A stretch of 44,954 nucleotides of DNA, from the NCBI GenBank assembly GCA_009859145.1, contig VRVR01000063.1, positions 15,283-60,236 of the forward strand, read 5' to 3'. Made by a program: the position numbers and the translations under genes. Origin of the DNA: Andalucia godoyi And28. Lineage: Eukaryota > Protista > Jakobida. The first letter of the stretch is position 1; every line of letters starts with the position of its first letter. The notes beneath the pieces were generated by a model, which worked only from the letters and a program-made list of their open reading frames with translations, was not told the origin of the DNA and ran no database searches. Positions 1 to 43,779 of this stretch are shown piece after piece.

Positions 1-944
1 TCCCTGACTTCCGTCGACATTATGCAGGTTGAGGATCCCGTATCGAGCAGTGCACGGAATGTTTTCGCACCCAAAAGGCCACGCAGAGTGACGTTGACCC
101 GCGGGACTTGGTCGTCAGAGCCAGGATCATTCTCGACAGCACGTTTCGCATGACCAGCTGAATCGGACGGAATCACAAGGCTGGTTGTGCGTTCTCCAAA
201 ACGCTGCCAACCAGGAACAGACTTGTGAGGGCAGTCGGGGCGAATGTGCCCCTCTCGTCCGCAGCCATGACATTTCTTCGTTGACGTGCCAGGTTCCGGT
301 TTGATGAAGGGTCTCTGATTCGCAGCTGAATGATGGTGGGGCGGGGCTTTGAACTCGCCAGGCTTGAACGAACGCGGCAGCGGCGAAGTTGCAGGCGGAC
401 CATTGGAGTTGTTGATCAAGCTCGCTTCGGCGCTCACTTTCACGAGTTCCTCGGTTTCCTCAATAGCATAGAGCTTTGCTTCAGAGAGGGAAGACGGGTT
501 TCGAAATTCCACCCTCTCAGCGAGGCGGACGGGACGTAAGTTCGAAATAAAAAGTTTGCGCAGAGGTTTGCAAGAATCGACATCAAGCGAACTCGCACAC
601 AGGGATTCCTCGGTCTCGTACTGAAGAATGTACGACAGGACTGCGTCGACAGAAGGGAAACGAGTCGACATGACGACTTTCTTGAAGCGGTCAAAGGCTT
701 CCAACTCCGACTTTGGAGCGAAGAATGCAGAGACGGCTTTGATGAATTCGACGTCCGTAGCCATGGCAACATCTGGGTTTCGGATGTTGACCAGTCTCAG
801 GACTGTTGAGGAGAGTAGCTCTCTGACTGAACGCTTTCCACCACGACTGGTGTACGCCTCGAAGTCAAGAAGAAACTTGGACCATGTCGGAGATGACAAC
901 TTATCCAAGAAGGGGACTGATGCTAGATCAGCGGTGCTTGTCAT
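1..944 (-). CDS. gag-pol: Gag-protease N-terminus of an LTR retrotransposon polyprotein (Ty3/Gypsy-like), running off the left edge
   Basis: Manual translation from ATG 944 is stop-free to position 1, so it is absent from the ORF track. It reads MTSTADLASVPFLDKLSSPTWSKF..., with a CX2CX4HX4C zinc knuckle (CHGCGREGHIRPDC) and an in-frame aspartic protease motif (ALLDTGSS). Confidence 0.92.
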   Translation of the reverse strand, partial: MTSTADLASVPFLDKLSSPTWSKFLLDFEAYTSRGGKRSVRELLSSTVLRLVNIRNPDVAMATDVEFIKAVSAFFAPKSELEAFDRFKKVVMSTRFPSVDAVLSYILQYETEESLCASSLDVDSCKPLRKLFISNLRPVRLAERVEFRNPSSLSEAKLYAIEETEELVKVSAEASLINNSNGPPATSPLPRSFKPGEFKAPPHHHSAANQRPFIKPEPGTSTKKCHGCGREGHIRPDCPHKSVPGWQRFGERTTSLVIPSDSAGHAKRAVENDPGSDDQVPRVNVTLRGLLGAKTFRALLDTGSSTCIMSTEVR

Positions 945-956
945 GAGTATTAATAC

Positions 957-1201
957 TGTGTTGACGGTATAAAATAAAACTAAATATAATAAACAAAGGT
1001 TTATTATACGCACAACGAAAAGAAAACAAAACACAAGAAACGAAGGCAAACAAACAAACAAACAAACAAAGAGAGAGAAAGAAAGAAATGAAGAAGAGGA
1101 AAGAAATGCAGGAGCGAATCTGTGTGTGAACAGGTACAGCCGTTGTCCACAACACCTCGATGACTGCGGGTCGATTCTTTGATTCAACTTCCGCACTCAC
1201 A
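957..1201 (-). mobile_element. Candidate LTR (~245 bp) upstream of gag
   Basis: On the minus strand it starts TGTG directly after a polypurine tract and ends CACA 12 nt before the gag ATG. It contains pyrimidine-rich simple repeats and a 10-bp-stem hairpin (985-1008). An alternative TGTTG...CAACA boundary pair lies at 1154/959. The partner LTR is outside the window. Confidence 0.5.
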
Positions 1202-1213
1202 TCCCCCTCCTCT
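1202..1213 (-). promoter_or_regulatory. Candidate polypurine tract (AGAGGAGGGGGA)
   Basis: A 12-nt pure purine run on the minus strand immediately followed by TG, the usual PPT-LTR junction. Confidence 0.45.
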
Positions 1214-1431
1214 GAACCAAACAGGTGTCGCGAAAGGGAAACGAGATCGCCAAAAACCACGCGTGATGGGGTCGTACCGATAGAAGAATGGTAAGAGGCG
1301 TTGATGATCCGCTGAACCAAGGGAATAACCTCAGACCATGTAGCGTGCACCCGAAAATCCATAACCAGTGAACGCAGATGGCACATCACCTCCGCATTCA
1401 CTCGTTCTACCGTACCATTCGACTGTGGGCG
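1214..1431 (-). pseudogene. Retroviral-type integrase core fragment
   Basis: RPQSNGTVERVNAEV...WSEVIPLVQRIINASYHSSIGTTPSRVVFG matches the PQSNGxVERxN (catalytic Glu at 1405-1407) and W...L..V....N...H.S.G.TP...FG motifs of Ty3/Gypsy integrases. The N-terminal DD part is absent. Confidence 0.85.
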
Positions 1432-1450: not shown

Positions 1451-2980
1451 TTGCGCCACCCAAATCTGACCGTTTCAAACAGTGCTTCTGTGTTTTATGT
1501 TCTTATGTTCCTGCTCTTAAGTTTTCTGTTATTCTATTTCGTAAAATTTGGACAAACTCTTTATTTTACACTTTCTATATACGGTGCGCCACACAGAGAG
1601 TATCAGACCAATCTAAAGCAATTTCGATTTGGTCTTTCAAGTGTGAATCAAAAAGGAATCTATACTCAGTCCGATGCACTTTCCGGTGTGGTGTCTGCGT
1701 TTCGTGAACGACCGTGCACATCCTTGACCAGCCCTCTTTGCTATCCTGTGGAGAACGTTCTTGTCAGCGCAGATGAAATGTTCACGAACTTTTATCGGTA
1801 GAATGCGACGACGTACACGGTCGGTTTTAGGACTCCTACGTTTGTGACGCAGATGATCAATTGGGACAGCCGCGTGAGTGCGAATTTGGAATGCGCAGCA
1901 AACAGCCTCCAATCCGAGTATTCACAACGATTCTCGGACATGAACTCCCGGGTGTCGATATACTTTGGAATCATCGTCCCGCTGTCTCTTGTTCTGCTTT
2001 TGATCATGATCCTGTTGTCCAACAAGATCCAGGAAGAGTTCCGCCAGGTGCAGCTCCTGATGTTGATGCTTCCTTACAAATGCGTGCAAGACAATCGAGC
2101 TATACATTCTCTGCTCTCTTCGGGACACGTACAGGCATCGGAGGCCGCTGAAGACGACACGAAGCTCGTAGACATGTCGGAGGCTCTGCCAGACGCTCTG
2201 GTGGAAGTTGACAGATCGGAGAAAATCGTCTTGGTGAACCGAGCGGCTGGGATCATGTTTGGATGTTCGCGAGACGTCTTGATTGGACAGTCCATCCGGG
2301 AACTGTTTACCGAAGCGGACGCGTATAAGGTGGGAGAATTCTGCCGGATGCTGAACGAAGCCGAAGTGTCCGGTCATGCATCGTCCGACATAGTTGCCGA
2401 GAAGTTGATGATGGTCCACACGCAGGATGGAAACGTGGAGACATTTCCCGCACAGATGTGCGCATCCGTGCAGCGTGGCTTCCTGATCTTGGTGATCCAC
2501 GACAGGACACAGAGAGTGGAGCAGGATTCGTTGATCAAAGAGGAGCAGACCCGGTCGGAGAAGCTGCTCAAGAATATCTTTCCTGAAGAAGTAGCATCGC
2601 AGCTCAAGAGCCGCATTCGTCCAGATGGTTCGATCGAAGCTACTCGCCCTATTTCGAAACGCTATCCTCAGGTGTCTGTGCTGTTTACGGACATTGCAGG
2701 CTTCACATCGTCCACAAAGGACGCGAGCCCCGATGAGATGGTGCGCGTTCTCAATGACCTTGTCATCCGGTTCGACCGCATTTGCATTTGATTGCTGGCA
2801 TCGACTGTGAACATTGCGAATAAGATGGAGAGTGCTGGGGTTGTTGGCCGAGTTCAGGTGACGAGAGAAACGCTGGCGCTCATTCACGACAAGTACGCGT
2901 ACGAAGAGCGCGAGAAGATCTTTGTTAAAGGTGTCGGCGAAGTCTCCACTGCTCTCATTATCGGAAGGAAGAGCATCTAA
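1451..2980 (+). pseudogene. 5'-truncated membrane PAS-adenylate cyclase pseudogene (TmcB-like family)
   Basis: It is collinear with the paralog at 4151-9215 (RFG, WD, LxxLP, PAS, LFTDIAGFT, FDCW, VNIANKME). Lesions: in-frame TAG at 1799-1801, a ~79-codon deletion at ~2786 that removes the KTIGD catalytic segment, and a 1-nt frameshift at ~2797. It ends in TAA at 2978-2980. Confidence 0.88.
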
Positions 2981-3061
2981 GAGCAGGGGGGCGGTTAGGG
3001 CAAGAGGAGAAACGAGTTGTCACCATTACTATGAAAGTGAATCCTAAAGGTTCTCGTTTAA

Positions 3062-3379
3062 TCAGATACCCGCGAGTTCCACGAACGGGCTCAAGATGGG
3101 CCGTCGGCACAGCGGACACTCGTGACGGGATCGACCAGGGGCAGGCATTCCCAAGAATGACTCCAGGCACACCCTGCAATAAATATGTCCACAGTTGGTT
3201 AGAACGCAAGGATGATTCCCAATGTATGTATCCGAGCATATTGCACAGTTGAACGATTCTTGTTGCTCGCGCAGCTTGGCTTCAGAAGACGCTAGGGACA
3301 ATTTGGACTTTGCGATCTGCGATTCTTGCAATATGATTTTCTCTTGAAGAACAGAAATGTCTGCTCGAAGACTGCGCAA
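3062..3379 (-). pseudogene. Coiled-coil plus C3HC4 RING-finger protein, 5'-truncated
   Basis: CAIC...CVLTNCGHIYCRVC...CPLC follows a coiled-coil. There is no ATG, and the frame closes at TGA 3389-3391 inside the Fanzor fragment. Confidence 0.8.
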
Positions 3380-4065
3380 GCAGTGGTATCATGGCATCGG
3401 AGCATATGCAGAGCGAAAATGGACCGAGCAGCGCAACGGCCGTGTTCGCGAGATTCTGGATGAGTTGTCGGCGCTGCCGCGGATCAATAAAGATGCCGAC
3501 TGGTTTCCGCATCTTCATTTCTACAGGATGCACATCGATGCGCTGTGGAGTCACTTCACCAACCACCAGATGGCGCGCCGCCGATTCCGCGGTCGTGTCA
3601 AGAAGCAGCAGGCGACGGTCAAGCTGCGGGACCGTCTGGCCACCCGCGACCAGGCGGACAGGTTCATCATCGCGTATGGCGACACGTCGTTTGGCCCCAC
3701 TGGTGCGAGAGGTGGGCATGCGGTTCAGGCATGTCGAGCCGATCGACGAGTACTGCACGACGAAGAAGTGCTGTGCTGGCAGAAACGATCTGGTATCACC
3801 TTTATTTCGGTTCCACCAACACCCGAAGAGACTGCGCATGCGGATGCTCGGGGATCCGGCGCTGCATCGTGAGAGCTTCGTGCCCCGGGGGTTGAGACAC
3901 TGTGCCACAGTGAACTGTCCATCTGACCGCCGGTGCGTTGGCCGCGATGCCAACGCTGCGATGAACATTCGTCAGTGCTGGCTCAGCCGACCGCCGTGCT
4001 TGTGTCGGAATCCACGCGGTATTCCCAGTGTAAGCGAGCTAGAGTCTCGCGTAGGGCGCCCCTGA
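3357..4065 (+). mobile_element. Fanzor1: Fanzor1 (eukaryotic TnpB/Cas12-like) nuclease remnant, C-terminal half, frameshifted
   Basis: Frame A (3357-~3722) reads RKQWYHGIG...RRRFRGRVKKQQATVKL...IIAYGDTSF. Frame B (~3718-4065) reads IDEYCTTKKCC, HCATVNC, RDANAAMNI and RPPCLCR. This matches the Fanzor1 RuvC layout: Gly at the canonical RuvC-II position, alternative Glu in DEY (3748-3750), RuvC-III Asp (3946-3948) and a C-terminal RPxxLxR. The RuvC-I DPG motif is absent. Confidence 0.85.
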
Positions 4066-4148
4066 AGATGGGTGTGAGGACTGCGAAGGATGTGCACTGG
4101 ATATGTCTGGTTCTGCCGGACATTTCATTACCTTTCCCCTAAAGGATG
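4021..4148 (+). ncRNA. Candidate omegaRNA scaffold overlapping the Fanzor 3' end
   Basis: Stems found by eye: 4025-4032/4093-4100, enclosing hairpins 4034-4038/4046-4050 and 4056-4061/4070-4075. These are followed by 4103-4110/4116-4123 and 4131-4135/4141-4145. The position matches TnpB/Fanzor guide scaffolds. Confidence 0.5.
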
Positions 4149-4150
4149 GA

Positions 4151-7100
4151 TTACTTCTTGGCAATGATGAGTGCAGTGGAAACTTCGCCAACACCCTTGA
4201 CAAGCACACGCTCTCTTTCCTCGTACGAGTACATCTCACTGAGCAGAGCAAGAGTTGATTTGCTGACTTGGACACGGCCGCACATTCCGGTGCTTTCCAT
4301 GCGACTTGCAATGTTGACGGCAGGAGACCAGCAATCAAAAGCAAACTTGTCTTCGCCAATGACACCACCGACGACGGGCCCACTGTTGATTCCAACGCGC
4401 ACGTTCCATTCTGCCGCCAACGGAGTTCCGAGAGCAAATTCTCGAATGGACGCAATCATTTCCAATCCGCATTCAACAGCATCAACGGCGTGGCAGTCTG
4501 ACCGACTGCTGTCCAATCCAGCTATGGCAAAAAAGGCATCGCCGATCGTTTTGATTTTCTCGACACGGTGCTTCTTGCAAATGCGATCAAAGCGGACGAC
4601 AAGATGATTCAGAACACTGACCACTTCTTCCGGAGAAGCATTCTTGATGGATTCCGTGAAGTCCGCAATGTCGCTGAACAAGATAGACACTTGTGGATAA
4701 CGCTTTGCAATGAGCGCAGGGGCATTAGCGCCGTCCGTGGCGGTTCTCGACAAAGATGTCGTCTGCGAAGCCGCAATGTTCCTGTTCTTCAGCTGGATGG
4801 CTACTTCTTCCGGCAAAATATGGCGTAACAAACCTTCAGACCGGTTCTGCTCCTCCTTGAGTACAGTATCTTGTCGATGCTCGGCCGTCCGATCCTTGAC
4901 AGCAAAACCAAGTATCCACCTTGTAACGAGAGCGTGAGCTTTGCAGGGAATGGGGTGTCCGCAGCATTTTCATGTCGAAGCATATTCAACTGGACTTCCG
5001 TTCGATCGGAGTTTGCAGCCTTCAGAGCATCGAACACGTGGTCCACAGCGACCTTCTCAGCAGAATTAGAAATTGCAAACAACGTACGTGCGGACCGGCC
5101 AAGCAACTGATCTCTTGGACGACCAAACATCACTTCTGCAGCGCGATTCACAAGTCCACTTCTCCGTTCTTGTCGATTTGCACCACCGCATCTGTCAGTG
5201 CTTCCGACAGATTGAGCGACGTTGCGTCCGTTTCCTCCTCCTTTGCCTGGATAATCTCGCCAGTTGAAAGCAGCACAAACAAGCGACCGTTGGAAAAGAC
5301 AGTCTTCTTAGGCAGCAGCGTCAGCAGCAAAAGCACCTGCCGGTTTTCGTTTTCGATGCGAAGCGATACAAGGATCATGATCAGCAGCATCCCGAAAAGA
5401 ATAACCGGCAAGGAAACAGCAAAGTAAACCGTCACACGAGTCTTGACTGCGTTCAGACTGTTGATCTCGTTCTCTGTCATCTTCTTCGAGGTGCTGACGA
5501 TGTTTTCCGACAACCGTTTGTCCCAGTCAGTCAGCTTGATCAGAGTATTTGCATTTGCGTATGTTGCCAACACCGTGGCAATGGGGAGCCTCCCAAGGTC
5601 AGAAAACCAGTTTGCCTGTGCAATTGCAATTTGCTCCGGGGACATGCAGGCAGTTGCAGTGGACGGAATGCAAGCTGATGCTCGGAACGCGTCTTCCAAG
5701 GACGAGTCTGCCATCTCAAATATACCTATCTGGCTTCGACTCGAAACTCCAAAGCGGTAACGGTCAAGCGCACTCGACAAATCCGATGCATACTGCCCAT
5801 GGCCTGCAATGATTGTCGCCAAAATAGCCGCCGGCAGAGGATAGAACAGAGCGACGCACGCCAAATCCGTCCCAGAAGCGTAAATGCGCCAGAATTCCAT
5901 CGGCGCCAGAATTTCATACCCAATTCCTTTTGTGTTGTTGTACAACACATATTGCTCCAAGGAAAACGCCACAACGAGGAGAAGGAGCACAGAAAGCAAG
6001 AGGACAATGCAAAAGAGCGTCCAGTGAAGTAAGTGCGATTGAAATTCAAAGATGATATACTGAGAATCGTCTTCCATGATCATTGAAGAATCTCTGTCCT
6101 GCGCAAACTGTGTTGCCAGGTTGTGCACAGTCTGCGATGCGTCCGCCTTTGGCAGACTCTCGATAATGTCATACAGACACCGCCTCTCCCTCCTGATTCG
6201 GCGAATGGCGGGCACCAGGAAGCAGATCGGAACAAGGAACAAGAGGAACAAAGACACTCCAAGAATTACGGAGTTTGTGACAATCATTTGCGATCGGAAA
6301 ATGTCGCCGAATCTCGATATGTACTCTTCAACGATTTCCCGATACGCGTTGCCAATCGGAGCAGCATTGAGAACTAGGAAAAGATGCGTACTCGACACCA
6401 CACAGCTCAACAAGGAGTAGGAAGGGAACTGCAAATTGCAAACAACTCGGAGTCTTTGCAATTCAATGACGAGTGAATCCCAAGGTGAAAACGGATTCCG
6501 AAGGAAGTCATCTCCAGTGAGAATCACTGTTTCGTCTTTCCACAATCTCATGAGCGTGGGATTGTCAACAGGTGGATTCTTCACAACCAAATCGTCCAAA
6601 AGCGAGGGTGCGAGGTTCAGAAGATTTGCCTGTAGCGCATAAGCCGTGGCGTAGGAGTTGTTCAAGGCGAAATTCGTTTGCGCGAACATCAGCGTTGACC
6701 TCATACTGAAAGTCTGGCCCATTTGATTCAGCTGACTAGCTTCGTACACCTCCGTTACACTAGTGTCCAACTTGGTAATGAGGCTATAAATCAATCCGAA
6801 TGCAATGGACATGATCACGACCAAAATCAGGACAGTTAGAGACATCGCGGTGATCATCAACCACACGGAGCGCGACTGATCCTTATGCACTTTCTCCCGC
6901 AACGACGCGTCCTTTGTTGATGACGCCGCAGAAGAACCACCATGGGATGAACCTTTCTCTGTTTCTTCTTCCACCTGCTGCGAACCGGAAGGAATGTCCG
7001 AGATAATAGAGAGCTTGCCACCTTCTTGAATGGACGGACAGTCCATTTCCAGTGTTGAGAGACGACGACGGCGATTGGAGCCGGGCTGCAGGGGGAAATT

Positions 7101-9215
7101 ACTTGAGAAGCTGCCCTTTTCGGGAATACCGAGAGAGAGCATGGAATTCGATCCCGCGCTGATGTCCCCGCCTGTGCCACATGTGCTCGCGTGTTCCATT
7201 CGCACTCGCCGAACACCATCCGACCTACCCATTTCAGAAGAGGCTGCATCCATTCTCGAAGAGGGAACGGAAGGGACCAAAAGTGCAGTAGAATACATGC
7301 TGTTCAAATCGCCCCCCTTGCAGCCCGAATCCTTATCCTGCCGTGTGTCGTTTTCACTCTCATATTGTTCAGCCATTTCCAACAATCCCTCGGCTCGGAC
7401 AGAATCGCGAAGGATGTTAAGGGTGAACAATGCATACTCTCGCAAGACAGCAGCAGACCGCGGAAATCGTTCTGTCAGTGTTCTGAGCTGCAATCGCAAC
7501 AGCTCAGTTCGATTGGAGATGACGCTGGAAAGACCGATCATGGATTCTGGAGACACCTTATTTTTCGCAATGTCGCGAAAGAATCGCAACACAAGACTCT
7601 CCAGAATGCGTCTTCCCTTTTGCACAACTTTGAGATGCACAGATATTTCACGTGATTCTTCCGAGAATCCCGAAAGCATGGAAATTCTCAAGTCGTAGCG
7701 CGCAGCGTTGAACAACAAGAGGTGCCACCACTTCGACAGGCCTTGTCGTTCAATGTCTGTCATCACATTGAACAGGGATGATCGTTCATGGGGACAGTAG
7801 TTCATCAAGAACAGTGCATAGTGCAGGAACACAGGAGTGGGATAGGTGGATTGCCTCAGTTCGGCTTGCAGTATGTAGCGGCACATGGCATGAACGTATG
7901 GATCCTCCGCAACAGCAAAGCGGCATGCTCGCTCCAATGTAAAGAAATCGTGGAACTTGAGAGCAAACACGCTGACAGCGGTCGGATTTGTTGCTCCACC
8001 ACTGCCACCTGAGAAATTGCTTGCGTCTGCACCAAGAGATGACTGGGTCGAATCAGCTTCGGAAACGTCATCTTCCGCGCTGACCGAGCTAGAGGCACCT
8101 GCAGACGCCATCTTCTCTTCCTCGGGCAAAACGCGGTTCTTGCGGTAGGAGGACCCCGGATTCTTCAGACTGCAGGATTCCAACAGCGTTCGAATGTACT
8201 AATTGTACGAATTCCAAAAGTATGCTGCACCGGCAGGAAAAATGACGATTGACAGTAAGAATCCAAACGCCCAGCTTGTGCGGCTGCTGGACGTAGAAAA
8301 TGCCGAAAACAGAAATGATGTCAGGGAGATACCCCCTGTTGTCCACAACCCGATTGAGTACAAAAGGTTAGCCTTCAGGTGGAGCATGGGAAGCCGCACA
8401 TGAAACAGCTTCCCGAAATAAAAGCAGACCAGGATTTGGAAGAACGACGGCAGCCATGCGGCGGTATCCTTGGGGTACACCGCACAGAACACGTACAACA
8501 CACAGCAGACCAAGCGAGCGGCACAAAAGCCTCCGACAGAAAAGATGTCGTTGCGCGCAAACGGTGCCGTAGTTTCGTTGAACCGGGTTTGGATGAACAA
8601 AAATGAATGGATGATGTCCGTGGCAGTCAACAGGACAAGTGAGAATGCAGAAAATGTCTGGGTCGCAATGGAGAACGAGGATGACCAGCACTCCGTACCG
8701 ACTGCAAAATCCGGTTGGCAGGTAACAGACCGCAAGAACAACATGTAGCCGGGGATTGCAAATACCGTGTGCATGATCCAGGACACCAGATTCAACCATT
8801 TGAGACCAAACACGAGGGATTCGTGGTTTCGCAGGAGCCCGGCGATGTTCCAAACGTAGAAACCGCAAAGAACAGTCAGGAAGAGGCTGCCGACTAGGGT
8901 CCACAGCAGCTGGAGATTTGCAGTGGGAAGAAGCAAGTCTGGCTACACAACCGAAAACATCACGGACAGAGCAGTGTCTGTCGCGGACCCCGCCAGTGCA
9001 GACGAATTCCACAGAGGCTTCATCGCGAGAATGATGAACTGCACGAGCGACCCGCCAATCAAGACACCAGCGGTTGTCCTCGGATGAAAAGGGAATGCAT
9101 GCTTCCCGATGCGGTGGAATACGGTGGCCGAATTCGTGCTGGGTCCTTCGAGACGGTCGTCTTGCAAATCCGTGCCCTGGAAGTCCGACTCGCCATCAGT
9201 GTTATCGGCATTCAT
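4151..9215 (-). CDS. Multi-pass TmcB-like membrane protein with PAS and class III adenylate cyclase domain (~1688 aa reconstructed; interrupted)
   Basis: ORFs 8943-9215, 8199-8936 and 5148-8183 share one frame and are separated only by TAG (8943-8945, 8199-8201). 1-nt deletions at ~5154 and in the A4 run 4904-4907 join the PAS and cyclase parts. The catalytic set is complete (LFSDIADFT, EKIKTIGDAF, FDCW, VNIASRME) with ATP-type Lys/Asp. It ends in TAA. Confidence 0.85.
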
Positions 9216-11195: not shown

Positions 11196-12098
11196 CTATT
11201 TCCACCGATCATCTTGGCGAATATGAGACTGTGCAGGTGAGCAAAATTCATTTGGTGCTATCAATCCCGGAATCATCCACGGGTTCTGGACACAAGGGGT
11301 CGGCTGCATCTCTGGTGCGCTCCTCTCTCGGTGACGGGCGGCGAACACAGGGCTGCGTACTAATGATCGATCATAGACACTGGTAGGATTACCTACGAAA
11401 TTGTGACCAAAGAATGAAAATTCTGTCGAATCGTCGGCAGAACCGAGGTTGCAAAGCTCGCTGCTGTCGCTTCGCGTCGAAACGAGGTTTGCGTGATGCG
11501 ATATCTCGTGCTGCTCAGTAGGATCACAATAATGGAGAAAGCAGTTCTCCAAACTTTGGTTTTCCGGAGATTGCGGATGGCAAATGTACGGGATCGGCAG
11601 TTTATGCCAACCAGGGACAGGGACAGCATCTGCGGAAAGGGTGCTTTCTGGATGAGTGAATCCTCCGGATCGCAACGCGAGAGGACTCGTCTCATGCGAC
11701 ACCGCGCTTATCTGGTCCGAGTCTCTCGAAACCCCATCTGGTGGGCTCACCGAGGGAGCAGAAATGAACAATTGTCGAGAGCGGAATGGACCATTGCGAC
11801 TCTGTTTCACCGCATGGCCTACACCGAATGTCCCATAATCATCGTTTGTGATGCACTCGTGCTCTTCATGAGCTGCTGCGAAATAGTGATCCAGCACAAT
11901 TTGCGGATCAACAGAACTGCATTCGTGAAGAGTGGAGCCAAGATCGGGTTCACTGATGATGATGATTGCGATTTCACATCCACATAAGAAAGAAAGCTCC
12001 ATCGCTTTTTTGAAAAGACCAGCTTTTCGCTTACGAAACGTGACATGACGTTTCTGCTCGTTTCTCACCAAAGAAATCGTAATCCTTTTTCTGCCCAT
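11196..12098 (-). CDS. MADS-box transcription factor (MEF2-like)
   Basis: MGRKRITISLVRNEQKRHVTFRKRKAGLFKKAMELSFLCGCEIAIIII is a canonical MADS domain starting at ATG 12098, followed by a low-complexity tail and a TAG stop. Confidence 0.92.
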   Translation of the reverse strand: MGRKRITISLVRNEQKRHVTFRKRKAGLFKKAMELSFLCGCEIAIIIISEPDLGSTLHECSSVDPQIVLDHYFAAAHEEHECITNDDYGTFGVGHAVKQSRNGPFRSRQLFISAPSVSPPDGVSRDSDQISAVSHETSPLALRSGGFTHPESTLSADAVPVPGWHKLPIPYICHPQSPENQSLENCFLHYCDPTEQHEISHHANLVSTRSDSSELCNLGSADDSTEFSFFGHNFVGNPTSVYDRSLVRSPVFAARHRERSAPEMQPTPCVQNPWMIPGLIAPNEFCSPAQSHIRQDDRWK

Positions 12099-13560
12099 AG
12101 CGAGAGTAGTTGATTTCTGGATATTCTCAGAAAAAAGCAAGGTGAAAAGAAGCAAAGAGGTGAGGCAAGAGAAACCAGCGGAAAGGATTTGGGATGACGT
12201 CGGAAATGAAACCCAGTGATTTCGGAAATACGAGTTGGTGAAAGCTGTAAAGTTTGGAGTAATTATAAAGATTTGCCCAGGCCAGTTCAAGCGCACTTGT
12301 CCAAACGCCAGCAGTCCAAAACCCCAGGAAACTGGAAGATCTGTTCATCCCTCACGGAATCCGCTGTCACAGCCGGTGCGAGCTGCAACTTGTACCAATG
12401 ACCTCTCCCTCCTAAAAAACTGGGAATCTCCATCGCCAAACAAAGACATGGAGGTTCCCAAACCAAGAATCCTCCCGGAAAAGGTGAAGATCAAAAAACC
12501 ATGGGTTTTAAATTAAACAACAAAACACGAAGTCCAGCATGAAGGAAATTCTTGTGCATCTGCTTGCTGAGCGGAGAAAGTGTTTACGAGAATGACGTAG
12601 AACCTTTATTTCAGAACTGAGCAAACAGCAAGTGAACATCCACGAATCAGAAGAAAGCTTGTTTGGCGGAACAGTGATGAGACGTAGTTGTGGTTTTATT
12701 CTATCACCGGCGGTCGACATCGCTTCCGATCCACGTAGGAGATGTGAAGCACTATTACAAGCCACACAAATGGTGATGTCCGATCCGCCTGGATTCGACC
12801 TTGCCGTGTCATTTGCTTTCTGGAAATTATCAGCACAGTCGTAGCCTTGCGCGTGCGCTGTCATCGAGCCCTTGGTTGCAAAGCGAAGGCCGATGCTGCG
12901 GTACCATCAACACACAGCCACATCACTCACCAATGTTGGCATTATGTTGACCTCTATTTGATTTTGCTGACGGTTTTCAGAAGTACCGATTTCCACTTTG
13001 AATATCTGTATTGTTGAAAGAAGCATAGAAGATATGGCGCGAAGAGTGACAACATCCTGCTAGCGGCCAATTTGGCTTCCTGTGCATGCGGAGATACACC
13101 ATCTGTACGCAAGGATTAGGAAGCAGAATTCGGTCGAGACTGTGTTCAGATCCAGAACAAAGTTGTTCTTGGTGTGGTTTTCCAAGTATGGGCATTCGAT
13201 CACACATTCGAGGACATCAATCGCCTTTCGATGAGGTTGTTGCGCTTAACCTTGTCAAATGCTCGAGTCTGCCTATGTCTCTTGCGCATCACCAATTCAC
13301 CATCAGCTCCGAGATCCGGATGTTTCCCAAAGAAGGCCCGGTGAAGGAAAACATCCTTCTCGTTTTTACCTCCGAGTGTATTTTTCAGAATGAGCTGCGC
13401 CCTGTACATGCGTCTTCCATACGTGATCGTTTGCATCACGCATACCTGGTTCTGACATTACCCCATCCTTTCTTCTTCTTCTTCCTGAAGATTCGGAACC
13501 GAACCAGGTGGGTTTCCTTATTTCCTTTCTAACCAGTCAAAAGTCTATCTTCAAACAAGA

Positions 13561-14806: not shown

Positions 14807-15469
14807 TCAGTTTTTTCCAGATGCTTTGCTCTGAGCCGTTGCTTGCGCAGTCTGGACGAATCCACTATTGTAGAGTATGAAAATTGTTTTGAGAAAGCGT
14901 GCGAGGCGCATCCAGTCTGAACCTATTGCAGCGTAAATGTGTGGATTTTTTGATTGTTTTTCCTTTCCTTTCTTTTCTAAAACAAAGGATCCTCGCTGAA
15001 CTGATCTGATCACCGCAAGCGACGAAATGCTGTACTCGAAAGATACCTTTCGCGAATTCAGTCGCTGCCTGAAGGAGATGGACACATTATTTTCTGACAA
15101 TTCTGCATAGAACTGTGCCCCGACTGGACCTTCTTCGTCGTCCTGTCTTGAGTTGCGCATCTATATACGACTTCCCGGGCATCCGTCTGAACAATCTGTC
15201 AATCCATATATGAACTTCGGTTGGGAGAAGCAAAAATCATCTGCACACTCCTTGGAACCTGATTTCTTCAAGTTGACCGGGAGTTTGTTCGTACCGACCA
15301 GTTTCAGTAAAATTGCATGCAAGCAGCATTTCTGCCCAAATCGGAATTGATGTTCGCCAAAAGTGGGCACTTGCAGCGTACGAAAGTGTTCTCGGTCATT
15401 CAAGCTGACAGAATCCCCACGTATTGCGAATTTGTGGCTTTTCGTGTTGTTGCCTCCATGACTTTCCAA
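14807..15469 (-). pseudogene. Interrupted ORF with a possible Death-domain-like segment
   Basis: ORFs 15161-15469 and 14807-15160 are in frame across one TAG (15161-15163). IYAAIGSDWMRLARFL resembles the first helices of Death domains (lG.dW..LAR.L). The match is short. Confidence 0.25.
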
Positions 15470-15519
15470 TTGGTTTTCCTGGTGTCAAGCAACAATATCA
15501 AACTCCACAATTCAGACAA

Positions 15520-18453
15520 ATGAGTGATCATTGTCCGCCGTCAGCCTCGCATGGCACAGAGAGCACTGCACACTGCAATGTTCCAAAGAGCAACATGGAG
15601 GTATTCTCACTTGGTCATTCCAAGCTCATTTCCGAATTGCAGGCTTTCCGAGAGCGACTGGCTCAGCTTGAATCGATGGAACGAGCAAGTTTACAAGCAG
15701 CAGAGTTGTTTCGATTAGCCGTAGAAGCAAGTCCAACCGCGTTGCTCATGGTAGAGGGCGGTCCAAACGGGATCATTCGGTTGGCCAACCGTGGCTCCGA
15801 GCTTCTTTTCGGGTATACCAACGAGCAGTTGATCGGCAAGAAGATCGAAATGCTCGTTCCAGATCGAATTGCCAAAGTTCACCCGTCATTTCGTGCCGAG
15901 TTTGCAAAAGATCCCAAAGCAAGGTCTATGGGAACGGGACGCGATCTGTTGGCGAAGCGATCGGACGACACGGAGATCCCTGTCGAAATTGGTCTTAATC
16001 CAATTCAAACGTCAGACGGTCTTTTTGTCCTCGCTAGTATCATAGACATCACGGAACGCAAGATGGCTGAGGAGCGGTTCCGTCTTGCGGTCGAAGCCGC
16101 GCCGAATGCCATGTTTATGGTTGGAAAAGATGGGAAAATCGTCATGGTCAACCAGCAAGCGGAAAGAATGTTTCTCTATTCGAGAGAGGAACTGGTCGGA
16201 CAAGCGATCGAAATACTGGTTCCGGAAAGCGTTCGTGACCAGCATCCACAGTTCCGTAGCACCTTTTTTGGATGCCCCGTTGTTCGGGCGATGGGGAAGG
16301 GGCGCGAGCTCTACGGCCAGCGAAAGGATGGCAGTATTGTTCCAGTCGAGATTGGACTCAATCCCATTGAAACTGCAGAAGGTATGATCGTGCTGGCCTC
16401 CGTAATTGACATTTCGGAAAGGAAACGGATGCAGGAGGAACGGCAGATAGCGCTTGAAGCTGGCCTGCAAGCGGATCTTGCGAAAACGAGAGAGCGCCTT
16501 CGAGCCGAGTTCCTGGCTCGCATGTCGCATGAGTTGCGGACACCGGCGAACGCTATCATCGGAATGACAGATATTCTGATAGACACCGAACTGTCCATGC
16601 AGCAGCGCGACTTTTGCCAGACCATCGCGACGGCGGCACAGACCCTAGTTTCGACTATCAACGACATTCTGGATTTTTCAAAATTGGAAGCTGGCAAGAT
16701 GACGATCGAGCACGTCAGCTTCGACCTGGAAGTCCTTCTTCACGAGTGTTTTGAAATGATCGCTCCCAAGGCGCAGAAAAAGTGTCTTGGACTGTCTCTC
16801 GTCGTTGACGGTCCGATGCCAGTCCTTGTTTGTTCTGATCGGAGTCGTCTTCGACAAGTGGTACTGAATCTGTTGAGCAATGCTGTGAAGTTTACAGATT
16901 CTGGCGGCATCCTTTTAGAACTTCAAAATTCGTTGATGAAAGCGAATGGCACCAGAGATGCCGATTACTGGGACATCTGGATTGTCGTATCGGACACTGG
17001 AATTGGAATTTCCGATGATGCACAACCTCAGTTGTTTCAACCTTTTATGCAAGGAGACTCGAGCACGACTCGCAAGTATGGCGGAACAGGTCTCGGTCTT
17101 GCCATTTCGAAGCGAATCATGGATGCCATGGATGGTACCATCACATTTCAAAGCAACGATGGCCGAGGTTCGCGATTTCAAATCCATCTGCAGATGGAGC
17201 GGTGTATGGATAAAGGATTGCCTCCTTGCGATCCTGCCGTTGCCATGACTAAGAAAAGCGCATTGATCGTGGATTCATGCCAGATTGACAGAGACGCTGT
17301 TATGAAGCAGTGTCATATGTGGGGCATGACGACCGCAAACGCACGGTCGTTCGAGGAGGCAATGGAGATGGCCAAGCGACAAGCGACTCCGTGTGATTTT
17401 CTCATCGTCAGCTTGTGTGGAAACGATGTGGCTCCGGCGGTGGAATTTGTTTCGCGGATGACTAGTATTATGTCTTGCCATGTGTTGTGGTTGCTTTCTC
17501 TGAACACAAGTTCATCTCAAGTCTTCTCGCGGCCTGGACAATTGGCTCTCTCAAAACCGGTGAGTCCGTCGCAGTTGCTGGACTCTCTGCTGTTGTTGTG
17601 TAATGATCGTCTTTCACCTGCCTTGGAAACCCAGTCGACGCCACCTTCTGCGCCTGGACCTTCAAACCGCAGCTTGTCGAATCACCTGTCTTCCTTCTTG
17701 CCTTGCCGGGCGCCGTCACCCGCAACTGTCTACCGAGGAAAGGTGTTGTTGGTGGAGGACAACCCAGTGAATCAGAAAGTCGCGATCTTGCTTCTACAAA
17801 AAATTGGCTACAACGTTGACTGTGCAAATAATGGGCAGGAGGCACTCATGGTTCTTGAACGAGAACCCTACTATCTGGTTCTTATGGATATTCAGATGCC
17901 AATCCTGGATGGATTGGCTGCGACGAGTCGCATTCGCGAGCAAGAGACGGAATTTCAGCACGTTCCCATTATCGCCATGACGGCACATGCGATGGAAGGC
18001 GACAAAGAGAAGTGCCTCGGAGCAGGCATGGATGACTACGTCTCCAAGCCTATTGACAGGATCCATCTCTTGCATACTCTTCGAAAATGGGATACACCGA
18101 TCAACGAAGTTGTTTGGATGAGACTTTTGACCTCTATGGGTGGTGATGAAGACGTTCGAAACCAGGTGGTCGCAGAGTTTTTGACGATTTCTTCGAAGTC
18201 ATTTGACGAGCTGCGTGTTGTTGTTCATGATAAGAGTACCACAGTTGAGAATGTCAAACGTATTGTGCACCGCTTGAAGGGGGCATGTTGTTCCGTGGCG
18301 GCGTGCCGCATGCACAATATTTGCCGTCGCATTCTGATGCTGCCATCTGCAGAAGATGCAAAGGACCGAGTAACTGACTTGTGTGAATGGCTTTTGACAG
18401 AGCTGCCGCTCGTGGAACGTGCATTGCGGGCGAAGATCGGGCTGTCCAGTTGA
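15520..18453 (+). CDS. Hybrid sensor histidine kinase: PAS-PAS-HisKA-HATPase-pseudoREC-REC-HPt (977 aa)
   Basis: Two tandem PAS repeats 123 aa apart (starting 15709 and 16078). H-box RMSHELRTP (His 16528-16530), N-box [10 protein letters not shown]1 DTGIGI and G2 GGTGLGL. The first REC lacks the phospho-Asp; the second has VEDN/MDIQMP/TA/KP. HPt VHRLKG (His 18268-18270). Intronless. Confidence 0.95.
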
Positions 18454-28224: not shown

Positions 28225-29634
28225 TCAGTCTCTCCGTTTGCCGAAGTCACCAATCCTACAATCGCTTTCTGATCCGAGATTCAGTCGATCTTCGATACTT
28301 TCCCCGGAAGCTCTCTTCGCGTTGTTGAATGGTGACGCAGAAGAACCAGACGTTTGGGGCGACTCCCGTGAAGAACTGGCGCATTGAAACGTATCTGGAC
28401 GACGTGGGATCTGGCAAGGGACGGGCACCGATGGCATGTAAACTGGATGCTGCTCCGTACGCGAACTTGGGCGCCGGTGAGGAAGTTCTGCTATCTGGGC
28501 GCAATATTCTCTCAGTCTCTGATCTGGAGAACATGCGGGACTCTGATTGGGATACCAGCAATCACGAGACCCAGGAAGAGCACTGCGAGAATAAACATGC
28601 TGTCCAGAAACTGTACCACCTTGCAGAGGTATGCTTTGCCACAGTAACAGAGGCCCAGAAGGATAGAGAGCAACCGCTGGCATGCGCGCGAACACTTGAT
28701 TCATCCTGTTAAGAGAGGGAAGTGAAACGGATCTGAAAGGATTGGGAATCAACTGTGAATGTGTAGTTGCCGATGAACTGAAAGCATCTTGTAAAGTGAG
28801 AGTTCGGTTAAATTGAACAGCGGCATCATGGACAGTGTCAACGTCACTGCGACTTCTCAAGGAGTGCACGGGCAATGGAGTAGCAGCGTACAAGTTATCC
28901 TCTTGTGGCAGATATCCTGTGGAAAGGTTCTGATGGAGGAATTTGCGCGGGTTTGGATCCAAAATATGATGCTGCGACTGCAACATAGTGCGATATTCCA
29001 GGCTACGTCCTCCAGGAATCGGGCCTGTCAAGACATTCCCGGAAAGTGAAGGAAAAAGGGAAGAGGGAATCGTGGACACGGTATATTCATTTCCTGTGCA
29101 ACGTGACGAACAGGCTTTGGTGTTTGCAGCATGGCCCAATTGCATATATTCATGTGAAGGCGCCAAACTGCGCAAGGCAGATGAAGGTCCGTCGTGGTGC
29201 TGTTCCAAAGTCCTCACAGTTGAATCCACATCCCACGCCTGTGGATTGAAAGGGGATTCTGGATATTCGTTAGACTGGGCATTGCTCGGAATATCAAGAA
29301 ATGCGCTCTGGGAAGGACCAGCAGTGCTAACAGCCCGTGGAATCTCCGGAGACATTCCAACATTTTCCAGAGTACATGGTCGATGGTGATGCCAGATTCG
29401 CTTCCAATTTTCGACGTCGCTTGATTTGTCTTTCATTTCGACAACAGTCCTTTCATGAAAGAGTATTTTAGTTTTCCAAGGTCTACCACGTTTTTTGTCG
29501 GTATACACACACTCATTGCGTGTTTGCACACATCGCCGACAAGGAGGGCCTGACCGATCGCACTTCGTGTGAACGTTTCGGCAAGAAATACAAGAACTTG
29601 GATGAAGATGTGAGCCAGGTTGAAGGTTTTCCAT
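28225..29634 (-). CDS. Zn(II)2Cys6 transcription factor
   Basis: MENLQPGSHLHPSSCISCRNVHTKCDRSGPPCRRCVQTRNECVYTDKKRGRPW, followed by a Ser/Pro-rich disordered tail and a TGA stop. Confidence 0.88.
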   Translation of the reverse strand: MENLQPGSHLHPSSCISCRNVHTKCDRSGPPCRRCVQTRNECVYTDKKRGRPWKTKILFHERTVVEMKDKSSDVENWKRIWHHHRPCTLENVGMSPEIPRAVSTAGPSQSAFLDIPSNAQSNEYPESPFNPQAWDVDSTVRTLEQHHDGPSSALRSLAPSHEYMQLGHAANTKACSSRCTGNEYTVSTIPSSLFPSLSGNVLTGPIPGGRSLEYRTMLQSQHHILDPNPRKFLHQNLSTGYLPQEDNLYAATPLPVHSLRSRSDVDTVHDAAVQFNRTLTLQDAFSSSATTHSQLIPNPFRSVSLPSLNRMNQVFARMPAVALYPSGPLLLWQSIPLQGGTVSGQHVYSRSALPGSRDCWYPNQSPACSPDQRLREYCAQIAELPHRRPSSRTEQHPVYMPSVPVPCQIPRRPDTFQCASSSRESPQTSGSSASPFNNAKRASGESIEDRLNLGSESDCRIGDFGKRRD

Positions 29635-30242
29635 GGTCACGAACTGCTTAAGCAGAAAAACTGAAAACTCCTTAAACAATTGATCTGGAATACAATATGA
29701 AAATATGAGGGTCTGCCATAACGCGTCTCTCATATCTGACCGGACTTCGACGTGAACTGCTTGTTTTTGAAGTTTCGTGAAAGTGTGGCATCTCGGAGGG
29801 ACATGGTTTTACAATCCTGTTGTCACACCAGCCAATTTGCTTGACTACGGAATTTCGGGTATTTCCTAAAAAGGCGGCCTATCGCGGAACATCCGACATT
29901 GACTTCATTATGTAGGAACATGAAAAGAGCAGTACGATGCAATTAAAAAAGACCTCTTAAACACGAAAAGGAGTATCCAGAATGGAGCTAAACATGGCCA
30001 ATGCGTCTTGTTCATCATCCACCGGCAAACATGTCATGCAAAAAGGAATTCAGGTGACTGGTAAAAAAAAAATACAGCCCTTTGGGAATGTAATTTATCT
30101 GCATTCTGGTTTCTGACACGGTTTTTGTTGGGTTGTCTACAATTGCGGATCCAAAAAATTACATGCATCTTTTTTAGTATCGGCACGATCCATTCGCTCG
30201 GAAATACCTTTCTAGGATTCGTGTTGCCTCACTTCTTCAAGA

Positions 30243-32624: not shown

Positions 32625-35489
32625 CTACTCGGCAGCAGGCTCCGAGGTTGCGGAAGCGACTTCCTCGGCAATTCCCGAGTCTCTCTCCTGGGGTGGCGTA
32701 CAATCATCATTCAACTGCTCTTCACAATTCGAAGGGGCCGACTTTTCGTTCAAACCAGTGTCGGGCACCATTTCCGCCGCACTGATGCTCGTCTCTGGCT
32801 CGGAAATTCGCGACTCTTCACTGGCGACGTCTTCTTTCTCTGGCGCCGCTTCCGTCTCCACGATGACGGTAGAGACGTCAATGCTCGATGACATCTTGCA
32901 TTCTGCAACATGCGATGATGATCCACACTCCGCGTCGTCTGTGCTCATGTCGAGCATGGGGATGGCGGGAGACAAAGGCAGAGCTGCAGACTTGCGCCGT
33001 TTCCAGAACCAGACTCCTCCAACGACAAGGGCGCCGAGGACCACCAGAGGAACCACAACAATTGCAGCAATGTCTCCTGCAGACAGTGAGCCCGATCCGC
33101 TTCCGTCAGACGATGGGGAAGAAGGGCTTCGGAGCGCGTACAAAACCGTCACAGTCGGTTGTGATCCGGAGCTGCGGACAGAGTGCAGAGCAGGTGTAGG
33201 AGACAACGGTGTCGGATTGAACAGACCGACGTACACCGGCCCGCTCGCAAGGATCGACAGTGTTGCCGTTGTCGACTCGATGCGCTGCATGACTTCCCAG
33301 CTGGCCGAAGAGGGCGACGGGTTCGATGTCGACAGATATGCGTCCACCGTGCCTCCGGTCACCGTGACAGTGATTTCGACGGTGCGGGCGCCGGCGGTTG
33401 CGAACGGAGGTGTGGAAACGAATTTTGGCTGGCCGGGAGCAACAGCACCTACCAGCACCTCTGAATTCTCGGCGACAACCTCTGTCTCTGACAGCGCAAT
33501 CCAGGCACTGCCTGCCGCCGATCCACGCATGCACACGAAGCACTTTGCACCTCGCACAAACCACGCGCTCGCCGACGTGAGCGTCGTCACATTCAGCGCC
33601 AGGCTCAGCGACGCTCCTTTGGTGCTTGCAGTCGGCAGCGTTTCAAATGTGCTGACATTGCACGAGGCAAACGATTCCACGGTCACTGCCTGGCGATTCC
33701 ATGTCGCATACACAGCAAGGGAGGCATTCGGCGAGCTCAGCTGGTGCGACGCACACTGCCAGTCTGTCGACAGCAGCGACAGTTCCGTGGGCGATAGTGC
33801 AGTCTCCGAAACATTGTAGACGTTGCACCGCGGAGCTCTGTCCACGCTGGAGACTCCGCTGCTGCAGGCCGTGCAGTATGGTGATGCAGTTGGCGAGTAC
33901 GTTCCTACTGGGCATGCATCGCACGCCCCGCTTGCATAGATGCCCGTGTAGGTTCCTGCAGGACACGGGCCGCATCCAGAGTTTCCTGATCCGGGAGCAA
34001 ACCACCCCGGGTAACACTGCACACAGCTTGCCGATCCGCTTGCGGGATACCATCCAGCAGCGCACGGTGTGCAGACGCTGACATTGTTCGCACCAACGAC
34101 TGACGACGCCTGTCCAAAGGGACAGTAGTAGCAGGAAGGCTGGTCGGGCAGATTCTGCCAGGTGCCTGCTGAGCACTGTGCACAGGTCGTTGCGCTGACG
34201 CGGTACTGGCCGGGAGCGCATGTGCAAGCGCCGCAGGACGTCGATCCGACAGCGGGCGCGCACTGTCCGGTGCTGCAAGCTGTGCAGGTAGCGCTGCCCG
34301 CCGCCGACGAGAACGAGTTCACGGCACATGGAATGCACGATGTTGCATTCGTCGAGCCGTTGCTCGGATTGTACGTGCCCGCGGGACAAAGCAAACAGGA
34401 TGCGTTGGATGTCGAGCTGGTATTCGGATTGTAGGTACCAGTAGGACACGATGTACAGTTAAGGGCTCCGTAGGCAGCAGTGTATGTTCCAGCAGCGCAC
34501 TCCTCGCAGCTTTGACCATTTTTGCCGGCAGAACCCGGCAAACATGTGATAGTCATCACGGTTCCCTTGCTGGCATATACTGCGTCTTGAAAAGCAACAT
34601 ACGGGGCTCCAGAGCTATCGAGTGCAAGATTAACGCCAGTTGCGGCTCCAGCAGAAAAGCCAGCTGATCCGACTGCTGCCCACACACCACTAGTGTACTT
34701 CATTACTGTTGCTTTGTTGGCGTTTCCTGCATCTTGAAAAGCAACGTATGGGACTCCAGAACTATCAAGTGTAAGACTCGTGTAACTTACGGCTCCAGCA
34801 GAAAAGCCAGCTGATCCGACTGCTGCCCACACACCACTAGTGTACTTCATTACTGTTGCCTTGTTGGCGTTTCCTGCATCTTGAAAAGCAACGTACGGGA
34901 CTCCAGAACTGTCGAGCGCAAACCTCATGTAACTTGCGGCTCCAGCAGAAAAGCCAGCTGATCCGACTGCTGTCCACGCACTGCCATTGTACTTCATTAC
35001 TGTCGCCTTGTAAGCATTTCCTGCATCCATAAAAGCAATATATGGTCCTCCGGAGCTGTCGAACGCAAGAGTCGTGTATTGTGCGGATCCAGCAGAAAAG
35101 CCAGCTGATCCGACTGCTGCCCACACACCACTAGTGTACTTCATTACTGTTGCCTTGTTAGAGTTTCCTGTATCTCGAAAGGTAACATACGGGACTCCAG
35201 AACCATCGAGCACAACATTCGTGTAACTTGCGACTGCAGCAGAAAAGCCAGCTGATCCGACTGCTGTCCACGCACTGCCATTGTACTTCATTACTGTCGC
35301 CTTGTAGCCATTTCCTGCATCTTGAAAAGCAACATATGGAACTCCAGAACTATCAAGTGCAAGACTCGTGAAATCAGCACCTCCAGCAGAAAAGCCAGCG
35401 TTCCCAACGCTGACCCAAGCGCTGAGCTGCTGCCCATGAGTCAAACAAACTATCGTGCAGAGGAGAACAACCTGGAGAACCAGTCTCAT
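32625..35489 (-). CDS. Type I surface protein: signal peptide, six 49-aa propeller-like repeats, Cys-rich GCC2/GCC3 (ephrin-receptor-like) repeats, TM helix and acidic tail (954 aa)
   Basis: N-terminal hydrophobic signal; repeats WxAVGSAGFSAG...LDSSGVPYVAFQDAGNxxKATVMKY; multiple CPAGTY..G...C..C units; TM segment IAAIVVVPLVVLGALVVGGVWFW followed by KRRK. Confidence 0.9.
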   Translation of the reverse strand: MRLVLQVVLLCTIVCLTHGQQLSAWVSVGNAGFSAGGADFTSLALDSSGVPYVAFQDAGNGYKATVMKYNGSAWTAVGSAGFSAAVASYTNVVLDGSGVPYVTFRDTGNSNKATVMKYTSGVWAAVGSAGFSAGSAQYTTLAFDSSGGPYIAFMDAGNAYKATVMKYNGSAWTAVGSAGFSAGAASYMRFALDSSGVPYVAFQDAGNANKATVMKYTSGVWAAVGSAGFSAGAVSYTSLTLDSSGVPYVAFQDAGNANKATVMKYTSGVWAAVGSAGFSAGAATGVNLALDSSGAPYVAFQDAVYASKGTVMTITCLPGSAGKNGQSCEECAAGTYTAAYGALNCTSCPTGTYNPNTSSTSNASCLLCPAGTYNPSNGSTNATSCIPCAVNSFSSAAGSATCTACSTGQCAPAVGSTSCGACTCAPGQYRVSATTCAQCSAGTWQNLPDQPSCYYCPFGQASSVVGANNVSVCTPCAAGWYPASGSASCVQCYPGWFAPGSGNSGCGPCPAGTYTGIYASGACDACPVGTYSPTASPYCTACSSGVSSVDRAPRCNVYNVSETALSPTELSLLSTDWQCASHQLSSPNASLAVYATWNRQAVTVESFASCNVSTFETLPTASTKGASLSLALNVTTLTSASAWFVRGAKCFVCMRGSAAGSAWIALSETEVVAENSEVLVGAVAPGQPKFVSTPPFATAGARTVEITVTVTGGTVDAYLSTSNPSPSSASWEVMQRIESTTATLSILASGPVYVGLFNPTPLSPTPALHSVRSSGSQPTVTVLYALRSPSSPSSDGSGSGSLSAGDIAAIVVVPLVVLGALVVGGVWFWKRRKSAALPLSPAIPMLDMSTDDAECGSSSHVAECKMSSSIDVSTVIVETEAAPEKEDVASEESRISEPETSISAAEMVPDTGLNEKSAPSNCEEQLNDDCTPPQERDSGIAEEVASATSEPAAE
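34550..35417 (-). repeat. Six coding tandem repeats of 147 bp
   Basis: The plus-strand motif CCAGCAGAAAAGCCAGCTGATCCGACTGCTG and its variants recur at 147-bp spacing, in frame within the 32625-35489 CDS. Confidence 0.93.
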
Positions 35490-42837: not shown

Positions 42838-43779
42838 ATGCTGCCACCGTTTGGATCGTTTCATTTTGCGACATTGCCGCTTGCAGCAACGAGCTGGTCC
42901 CTGTGTCTCGGATGATCCAAGTCTCGCAACCAACTGTGGCCGTTATAGAGCGCTTCACGTCCGTTGGTGGTTGTGTTTACTGGTGGATCGGATGGAATTG
43001 GAAGAGAAATTACACTTGTTCTCTCTCGCATGTCCTCTGATTTGCTTCCTATCTGTATTGTTGTTGCGTCACGGTCTCTCCACCACCCAATTCTTGCAGT
43101 TGCAAAGGAATGCTGCGCTGCTGGCGCGGCTGATGCACATGGATGCGTGGGCAATGTGTCGGATGCTGCTTCATGCAGACAGCTGATTGAGTTTACATTG
43201 GAGCGGTACAGATATCTTGATATCCTGGTGAACAACGGAGGAGTTTCGCAAGTGTGCAAGTTCGAAGATGTCAAAGAGTGTCATTTTGACGACATGGAAC
43301 ATTTGTTCCGCGTCAACACTGTGGGTGCCATGTTTTGCACACATGCTGCTCTTTCCCATCTGAAAAGCATCTCGAGGACTCGTTGTCGCAGTGTCTTCTC
43401 TGCAAGGTTTAAGCGGGTTTCCAAACAGCACTGTCTACTGTACGAGGAAGCATGCGTTGCAGGGATTCTGCGGTGCATTCAGAATGGAACTAATCCGAGC
43501 AACGTCGACGTTCTTGTCGTGTCTCAGGGCCCGATTGCCTCTAATATTCATCAACGAAGACTGATTGCTGACGAGAGAGTGAACGCTCACATTCAACGCG
43601 GTGAGTCAATTTCCGTTCACGAGTGTGCGGCTTTGTCTGTGGAGGCCATGTTTCACAGAGAACGTCAAGTCGTGATGGCGTTTAATGGAAAGCTGCTTCG
43701 GAGGATCCAGCTTGTCGCGCCAGGATGGGCGGACAGGCTGGTCATTCGAGCCGTGGACAAGTTCGACAAGTCGAAGTAA
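42838..43779 (+). pseudogene. Short-chain dehydrogenase/reductase (DHRS7-like), interrupted
   Basis: TGGSDGIG and LDILVNNGG motifs are present. VVAVSSLQG...YCTRKHALQGF lies in a shifted frame between the A4 run at 43363-43366 and ~43495. In-frame TGA 42913-42915 and TAG 42946-42948 precede the Rossmann motif. Confidence 0.85.

Follow-up and report, generated by a model that had tools for sequence, protein, structure and literature searches.

A decayed Fanzor1-like nuclease copy and the candidate omegaRNA segment at its 3' end in the jakobid Andalucia godoyi

A Fanzor1-like remnant between convergent cyclase genes

The DNA analysed here, hereafter the window, is a 44,954-nucleotide (nt) stretch of contig VRVR01000063.1 from assembly GCA_009859145.1 of Andalucia godoyi, a jakobid of the Discoba (window position 1 is record position 15283). 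At positions 3363-4065, between two convergent PAS-adenylate/guanylate cyclase paralogues and beside an open reading frame (ORF) for a RING-finger protein, it holds what sequence matches identify as the remnant of a Fanzor1-like nuclease gene; within 20 kb of the contig, the only indexed gene is a 171-aa ORF at 3357-3872. A prediction made earlier from the letters alone (the original prediction) had proposed that the segment across the 3' end of these ORF fragments is a structured omegaRNA, the guide RNA of TnpB/Fanzor nucleases, and that its 3' flank would be antisense to the mRNA of the neighbouring cyclase. We examined the identity of the remnant, the fold of the segment and its relation to the cyclase gene.

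The remnant begins abruptly, after the site of the lost RuvC-I motif. Homology to its paralogues and to an intact relative, P0006 (see below), starts only at about 3363, which makes this a 5'-truncated copy; nothing upstream of RuvC-I is retained, and the paralogues show GIDPG about 25 residues ahead of the point at which the remnant starts. A frameshift near 3715 splits the rest into two frames. The remnant carries IIAYGDTSF and, within IDEY, the RuvC-II glutamate (3748-3750). Its zinc finger is degenerate, with CCAG in place of the CCDC or CCEC of relatives and then HCATVNC. RuvC-III follows within GRDANAAMNI (D at 3946-3948), and the remnant ends with a TGA at 4063-4065. Nowhere does one open frame combine a complete split RuvC (D...E...D) with CxxC...CxxC. 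With its 5' half lost, a frameshift and a mutated zinc finger, this copy is a pseudogene.

Direct matches of the remnant to known families are below threshold: E = 0.003 for Pfam Cas12f1-like_TNB and E = 0.002 for NCBIfam guided_TnpB (profile positions 336-388 of 389). Searched directly against the PDB, it gave only unrelated proteins (E >= 0.1), and word-indexed searches returned matches only among A. godoyi proteins. When 1.84 billion representatives were scanned exhaustively by HMMER with the translation of 3700-4062, phmmer gave a significant match (E = 1.6e-13) to P0006, an intact protein of 687 aa encoded at 2173-4236 of locus L002 in the Logan assembly of SRR12487036. No motif is missing from P0006, which shows GVDPG, AYGDASF, VDEF..CCDC, HGLRHCKTANC and SRDGNAARNI. 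The same scan also gave the fragment P0007 (ENA, L003) and one further A. godoyi fragment; three other matches were repetitive and spurious and were dismissed.

A metagenome scan with the family alignment recovered distant relatives, including a 568-aa ORF of L006 that lies above the Pfam threshold. This ORF matches P0006 from RuvC-I to RuvC-III (E = 7e-12) and, over 400 residues, the Spizellomyces Fanzor1 SpuFz1, whose structure is solved (8GKH; E = 6.6e-13). A five-sequence family profile matched SpuFz1 (9.7e-13), Parasitella Fanzor1 (1.3e-10) and ISDra2 TnpB (0.008). P0006 alone had a single PDB match, Parasitella Fanzor1 at E = 0.6, and AlphaFold2 run on it without an alignment reached a mean predicted local distance difference test score of 38.6. 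The viral contig L008, which is phage-like, matched the pattern only spuriously and was set aside. The transitive chain from the remnant through P0006 and the L006 ORF to SpuFz1 is significant although the direct matches are not, and on the strength of these alignments the remnant is a dead member of a divergent Fanzor1-like (eukaryotic TnpB-type) nuclease family, in agreement with the TnpB/Fanzor context that had been claimed for the ORF fragments. The protein has the RuvC-II, zinc-finger and RuvC-III signature of bacterial TnpB such as that of ISDra2; its similarity to Fanzor1 is far greater than that to TnpB. The only close homologues of the remnant are the A. godoyi gene models ANDGO_03127, ANDGO_03149, ANDGO_05534 and ANDGO_02339, of 131-287 aa and each missing catalytic segments. 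They stand for at least four further decayed copies; the first two have an identical 214-residue sequence in common.

The segment across the 3' end of the remnant

The candidate RNA segment, 4021-4145, comprises the last 14 codons and the stop of the remnant ORF (45 nt) and 80 nt downstream. All five stems of the original prediction were found by direct reading (Table 1), and RNAfold recovered essentially the same five-stem fold. The strongest local hairpin is weaker on the minus strand because of its two G.U pairs. The segment had no match in Rfam at either threshold.

In Fanzor elements, the omegaRNA (also termed fRNA) lies between the 3' end of the ORF and the right inverted repeat, and the guide lies just beyond (PMC10432273, PMC10530073). 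The candidate has this position and strand: like a Fanzor1 omegaRNA it runs on the strand of the nuclease ORF, starts within the final codons and continues for about 80 nt beyond the stop, with several predicted stem-loops and with flanking host DNA as its putative guide. This positional fit is the main argument for an omegaRNA and makes that reading plausible by analogy. In contrast to a Fanzor1 omegaRNA, neither an inverted repeat nor a defined right end was found for the candidate, and its fold is not significant at neutral boundaries; it shares no sequence or structure with characterised or related omegaRNAs, and the nuclease gene that it adjoins is truncated and frameshifted. The omegaRNA (reRNA) of the IS200/IS605 element ISDra2 likewise derives from the nuclease gene's 3' end together with the transposon's right end, and takes its guide from the flank; here, unlike in the ISDra2 system, the host is a eukaryote, and no TnpA or subterminal hairpins were identified.

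The reading that we therefore prefer, with a probability of about 0.5, takes 4021-4145 as what is left of the element's 3' end, decaying, no longer functional and possibly once coding for an omegaRNA. The Fanzor1-like copy has lost its 5' half, has the frameshift near 3715 and has a mutated zinc finger, and its last codons, its stop and about 80 nt downstream correspond by position to the place where Fanzor elements encode the omegaRNA scaffold. A former omegaRNA fold may survive in some of the predicted stems, and others may be due to chance. The data show that the remnant is a Fanzor and has decayed, how the genes lie, and that the fold statistics are weak; we infer that 4066-4145 belongs to the element and that it once encoded an omegaRNA.

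Table 1. Positions of the features at the nuclease remnant and the adjoining minus-strand genes (window coordinates)
Feature	Position	Strand	Basis or detail
RING-finger ORF, 105 aa	3062-3379	-	Pfam zf-RING_5, E = 4e-10
Fanzor1-like remnant, first frame segment (RLRKQWYH ... IIAYGDTSFGPTGARGG)	3363-3716	+	Three-frame translation; tblastn of the A. godoyi paralogues P0002/P0003; alignment to P0006
Fanzor1-like remnant, second segment	3717-4065	+	Pfam/NCBIfam below threshold; phmmer to P0006; alignment
Candidate omegaRNA scaffold, five stems	4021-4145	+	Direct reading; RNAfold; shuffles; window background
Outer stem, CCAGTGTA / TGCACTGG	4025-4032 / 4093-4100	+	One G.U pair
Stem, GCGAG / CTCGC	4034-4038 / 4046-4050	+	Read from sequence
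Stem, GCGCCC / GGGTGT	4056-4061 / 4070-4075	+	Two G.U pairs
Stem, ATGTCTGG / CCGGACAT	4103-4110 / 4116-4123	+	Read from sequence
Stem, CCTTT / AAAGG	4131-4135 / 4141-4145	+	Read from sequence
Strongest local hairpin	4103-4123	+	-11.2 kcal/mol; 8 bp with 5-nt loop or 9 bp with 3-nt loop
Proposed guide of the original prediction, ATGGATTACTTCTTGGCAAT	4146-4165	+	Complementary to the last four codons and stop of the cyclase and 5 nt of its 3' untranslated region (UTR)
Convergent PAS-adenylate/guanylate cyclase gene	4151-8183	-	Three frames: 8183-5148, 5151-4801, 4831-4151

Alternative origins of the segment and its relation to the cyclase gene

The fold statistics, the comparison with other copies and the lack of a defined right end weigh against a relic of an omegaRNA. 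The segment had been described as structured; its stems are present, but their stability is not clearly above chance. For the span originally proposed, 4021-4170, the minimum free energy is -45.6 kcal/mol (z = -0.65), and 49 of 200 shuffled sequences are equally stable; for 4021-4146, z is -1.55 (p about 0.08), and for the post-stop part alone, 4066-4146, it is -0.53. A value of -2.7 is obtained only for the 100 nt of 4025-4124, the boundaries of which were picked after the stems had been seen. Against a GC-corrected background of 8972 100-nt windows from both strands, this stem-trimmed segment falls within the top 0.56%, and neutral grid windows over the candidate lie at -1.5 to -1.8 standard deviations (roughly the top 3-6%); structure exceeds background to a modest degree on the plus strand but not on the minus strand. 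The hairpin at 4103-4123 is equalled or surpassed in stability by about 35 on each strand of the 45-kb window, or about one per 1.3 kb, and five of these sit inside the GC-rich Fanzor remnant itself. The fold is only marginally better than chance and is statistically weak.

Other A. godoyi copies were compared as gene-model proteins, and statements about their DNA come from back-translation. Back-translation gives C at 4031 (T4031C) in two lineages, ANDGO_03127/03149 and ANDGO_05534, in which the 8-bp outer stem would be perfectly Watson-Crick with C4031 opposite G4094, and G4058A and C4060T in ANDGO_03127/03149. We rejected these three substitutions as pair-preserving evidence, because transitions opposite G or U keep pairing by default and thus carry no weight. 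For ANDGO_05534, back-translation points to a change at 4058 that is disruptive, and probably to an indel just after 4063. Across the 51.6 kb of sequence searched from A. godoyi there was no second or solo copy of the candidate, nor any further match to a covariance model of the five-stem fold; the same model had no match in L002-L007 either, where the best scores, on the wrong strands, were at E about 0.7-1.5, and a concatenated six-frame translation of 3330-4160 gave no match when used as a query for ORF calls of other copies.

Comparison with the relatives points the same way. The DNA homology of the window to L002 and L003 stops near 4010, before the candidate, and the 3' regions of these loci have no significant sequence similarity to it (p = 0.44, 0.09 and 0.21); a motif that seemed shared by eye, GTA(A)GCGAGC ... 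GGGCG..CCCCT (L002 about 4313-4345), is at chance level (p = 0.44). Directly after the stop of P0006, L002 has a single extended hairpin of 78 nt (4237-4314; -30.9 kcal/mol, z = -3.0), so that the post-stop structure of the intact relative differs from that of the candidate. No convincing terminal inverted repeats were found in L002. As a candidate for the omegaRNA of the family, its hairpin is preferable to the segment in the window.

The right end of the element could not be placed by a terminal inverted repeat, by a second copy in the window or by homology to the UTR of a paralogue. The boundary between scaffold and guide that had been drawn at 4145/4146 rests solely on the end of the last 5-bp stem, and neither a terminal repeat, nor a target-site duplication, nor a drop in identity between copies, nor a comparison of paralogues bears it out. 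With the right end undefined, 4066-4145 could be cyclase 3' UTR or plain spacer; the sequences downstream of the two cyclase paralogues, compared to separate native UTR from element, have no similarity.

A rival explanation is chance, in which 4021-4065 would be the coding tail of a pseudogene, 4066-4150 unrelated spacer or cyclase 3' UTR, and the stems simply what moderately GC-rich DNA yields once stems are looked for. The weak z scores of the span originally proposed and of its post-stop part, the abundance of equally stable hairpins, the lack of similar sequence or structure in relatives and the negative Rfam search are all as this explanation would have them. It does not account for a position that is exactly that of Fanzor omegaRNAs, for the placement of the stem-trimmed 100 nt in the top 0.6% of windows on the plus strand only, or for the perfect outer stem that the two other copy lineages imply, and we consider chance structure possible but less likely than a relic. 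It is quite improbable, by comparison, that the hairpins are part of the cyclase RNA from the minus strand, as an element of its 3' UTR or of 3'-end formation. The segment begins 5 nt past the cyclase stop, so that the 3' UTR of the cyclase must traverse it, but the minus-strand fold of 4021-4170 is unremarkable and no better than shuffles (z = -0.41), minus-strand windows over the candidate have positive GC-corrected scores, G.U pairs of the plus strand turn into A.C mismatches, and no similar sequence lies downstream of the paralogous plus-strand cyclase.

The cyclase gene itself bears on the remaining possibilities. Its 3'-terminal ORF, 4151-4831 (minus strand), matches Pfam Guanylate_cyc (E = 2.6e-53) and ends with TAA at 4153-4151, which the proposed guide ATGGATTACTTCTTGGCAAT does span, as had been claimed. 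The antisense geometry of the 3' flank is equally true; it has no demonstrated function and is a plain result of convergence, because two closely packed genes converge here. A TnpB/Fanzor guide is whatever sequence flanks the right end of the element, and it directs cleavage of DNA next to a target-adjacent motif, not antisense regulation of an mRNA. Moreover, the minus-strand cyclase is frameshifted twice, near 5150 and near 4860. The original prediction had left an effect on the cyclase gene as speculation; nothing suggests that the segment is still functional or has such an effect.

A functional RNA would have to be transcribed, be loaded in trans by an intact Fanzor, and then target DNA matching 4146-4165 or act antisense on the cyclase transcript. 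Precedents exist: gene-less 'ghost' omegaRNA loci are active with SpuFz1 (PMC10432273), and Chlamydomonas reinhardtii has about 20 extra fRNA copies (PMC10530073). The candidate resembles the ghost omegaRNAs of S. punctatus and the solo fRNAs of Chlamydomonas in being an omegaRNA-like 3' end that adjoins no functional nuclease gene, and the strand asymmetry of its structure, in favour of plus, is in keeping with this explanation. Ghost loci, however, occur in multiple conserved copies with intact ends in a genome that has an intact Fanzor, whereas here the 51.6 kb searched held a single copy and no intact Fanzor was found among the annotated proteins. For loading in trans, which had also been proposed, no intact Fanzor of this family was found: from the annotated A. 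godoyi proteins, two homologue searches and one exhaustive search gave only the fragments of 131-287 aa. In addition, the sole matching guide site is the element's own flank, with no defined target-adjacent motif and no defined right-end boundary, the nuclease acts on DNA and not on mRNA, and the fold statistics are weak. We regard a functional RNA of this kind as very unlikely and continue to prefer the relic reading, in which the 3' end of the element is decaying.

Observations on the neighbouring genes are recorded here for completeness. In the plus-strand cyclase paralogue at 1844-2980, RFDRIC jumps to FAFDCW with the loss of about 75-80 codons of the cyclase core, and a stop lies at 2789-2791; the two disrupted cyclase paralogues are either real pseudogenes or products of assembly indels. 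The RING-finger ORF at 3062-3379 (minus strand) has a coiled-coil-like N-terminus and abuts the exact 5' truncation point of the Fanzor remnant. No counterpart of it stands beside the intact relative in L002, and we treat it as a neighbour rather than as a part of the element.

Other window features and significance for the family

Several features elsewhere in the window were noted. Its most structured 100-nt windows, at 43641-43800 (plus strand), 35345-35454 (minus) and 12395-12514 (minus), score -3.4 to -4.2 standard deviations after GC correction and are clearly more structured than the candidate omegaRNA. A 954-aa ORF with ephrin-receptor-like cysteine-rich repeats (32625-35489, minus) contains, at 34494-35381, at least five tandem copies of a 147-nt unit with 76-87% identity and a local GC content of 0.56-0.60. 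Also present are a Zn(2)-Cys(6) binuclear-cluster ('fungal-type') transcription-factor domain (28225-29733, minus), which is slightly unexpected in a jakobid, an SRF/MADS-box protein (11196-12296, minus) and a hybrid PAS histidine kinase with receiver and Hpt domains (15424-18453, plus). An ORF at 928-1401 (minus) that looked integrase-like by eye had no Pfam match at E <= 0.001 and was dropped.

As originally posed, the finding matters little: the segment most likely belongs to a dead transposon gene, of which it is the decaying 3' end, and its antisense relation to the cyclase is incidental. The most far-reaching version of the proposal is an orphan omegaRNA of a jakobid that is still expressed and that an intact, unannotated Fanzor loads in trans, with a flank-derived guide directed at, or antisense to, the 3'-terminal part of a PAS-cyclase gene. 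This version is very improbable; if it were true, a deep-branching eukaryote would have recruited the guide RNA of a transposon to control one of its own genes.

The analysis has a modest by-product, namely that the jakobid A. godoyi carries a divergent Fanzor1-like family that falls below the thresholds of both Pfam and NCBIfam. No paper in the full-text collection searched named Fanzor and Andalucia together, and the main texts of two Fanzor surveys do not mention jakobids or Discoba. For finding the omegaRNA of this family, the intact 687-aa relative in L002, which comes from a public read set, provides a better start than the decayed copy in the window.

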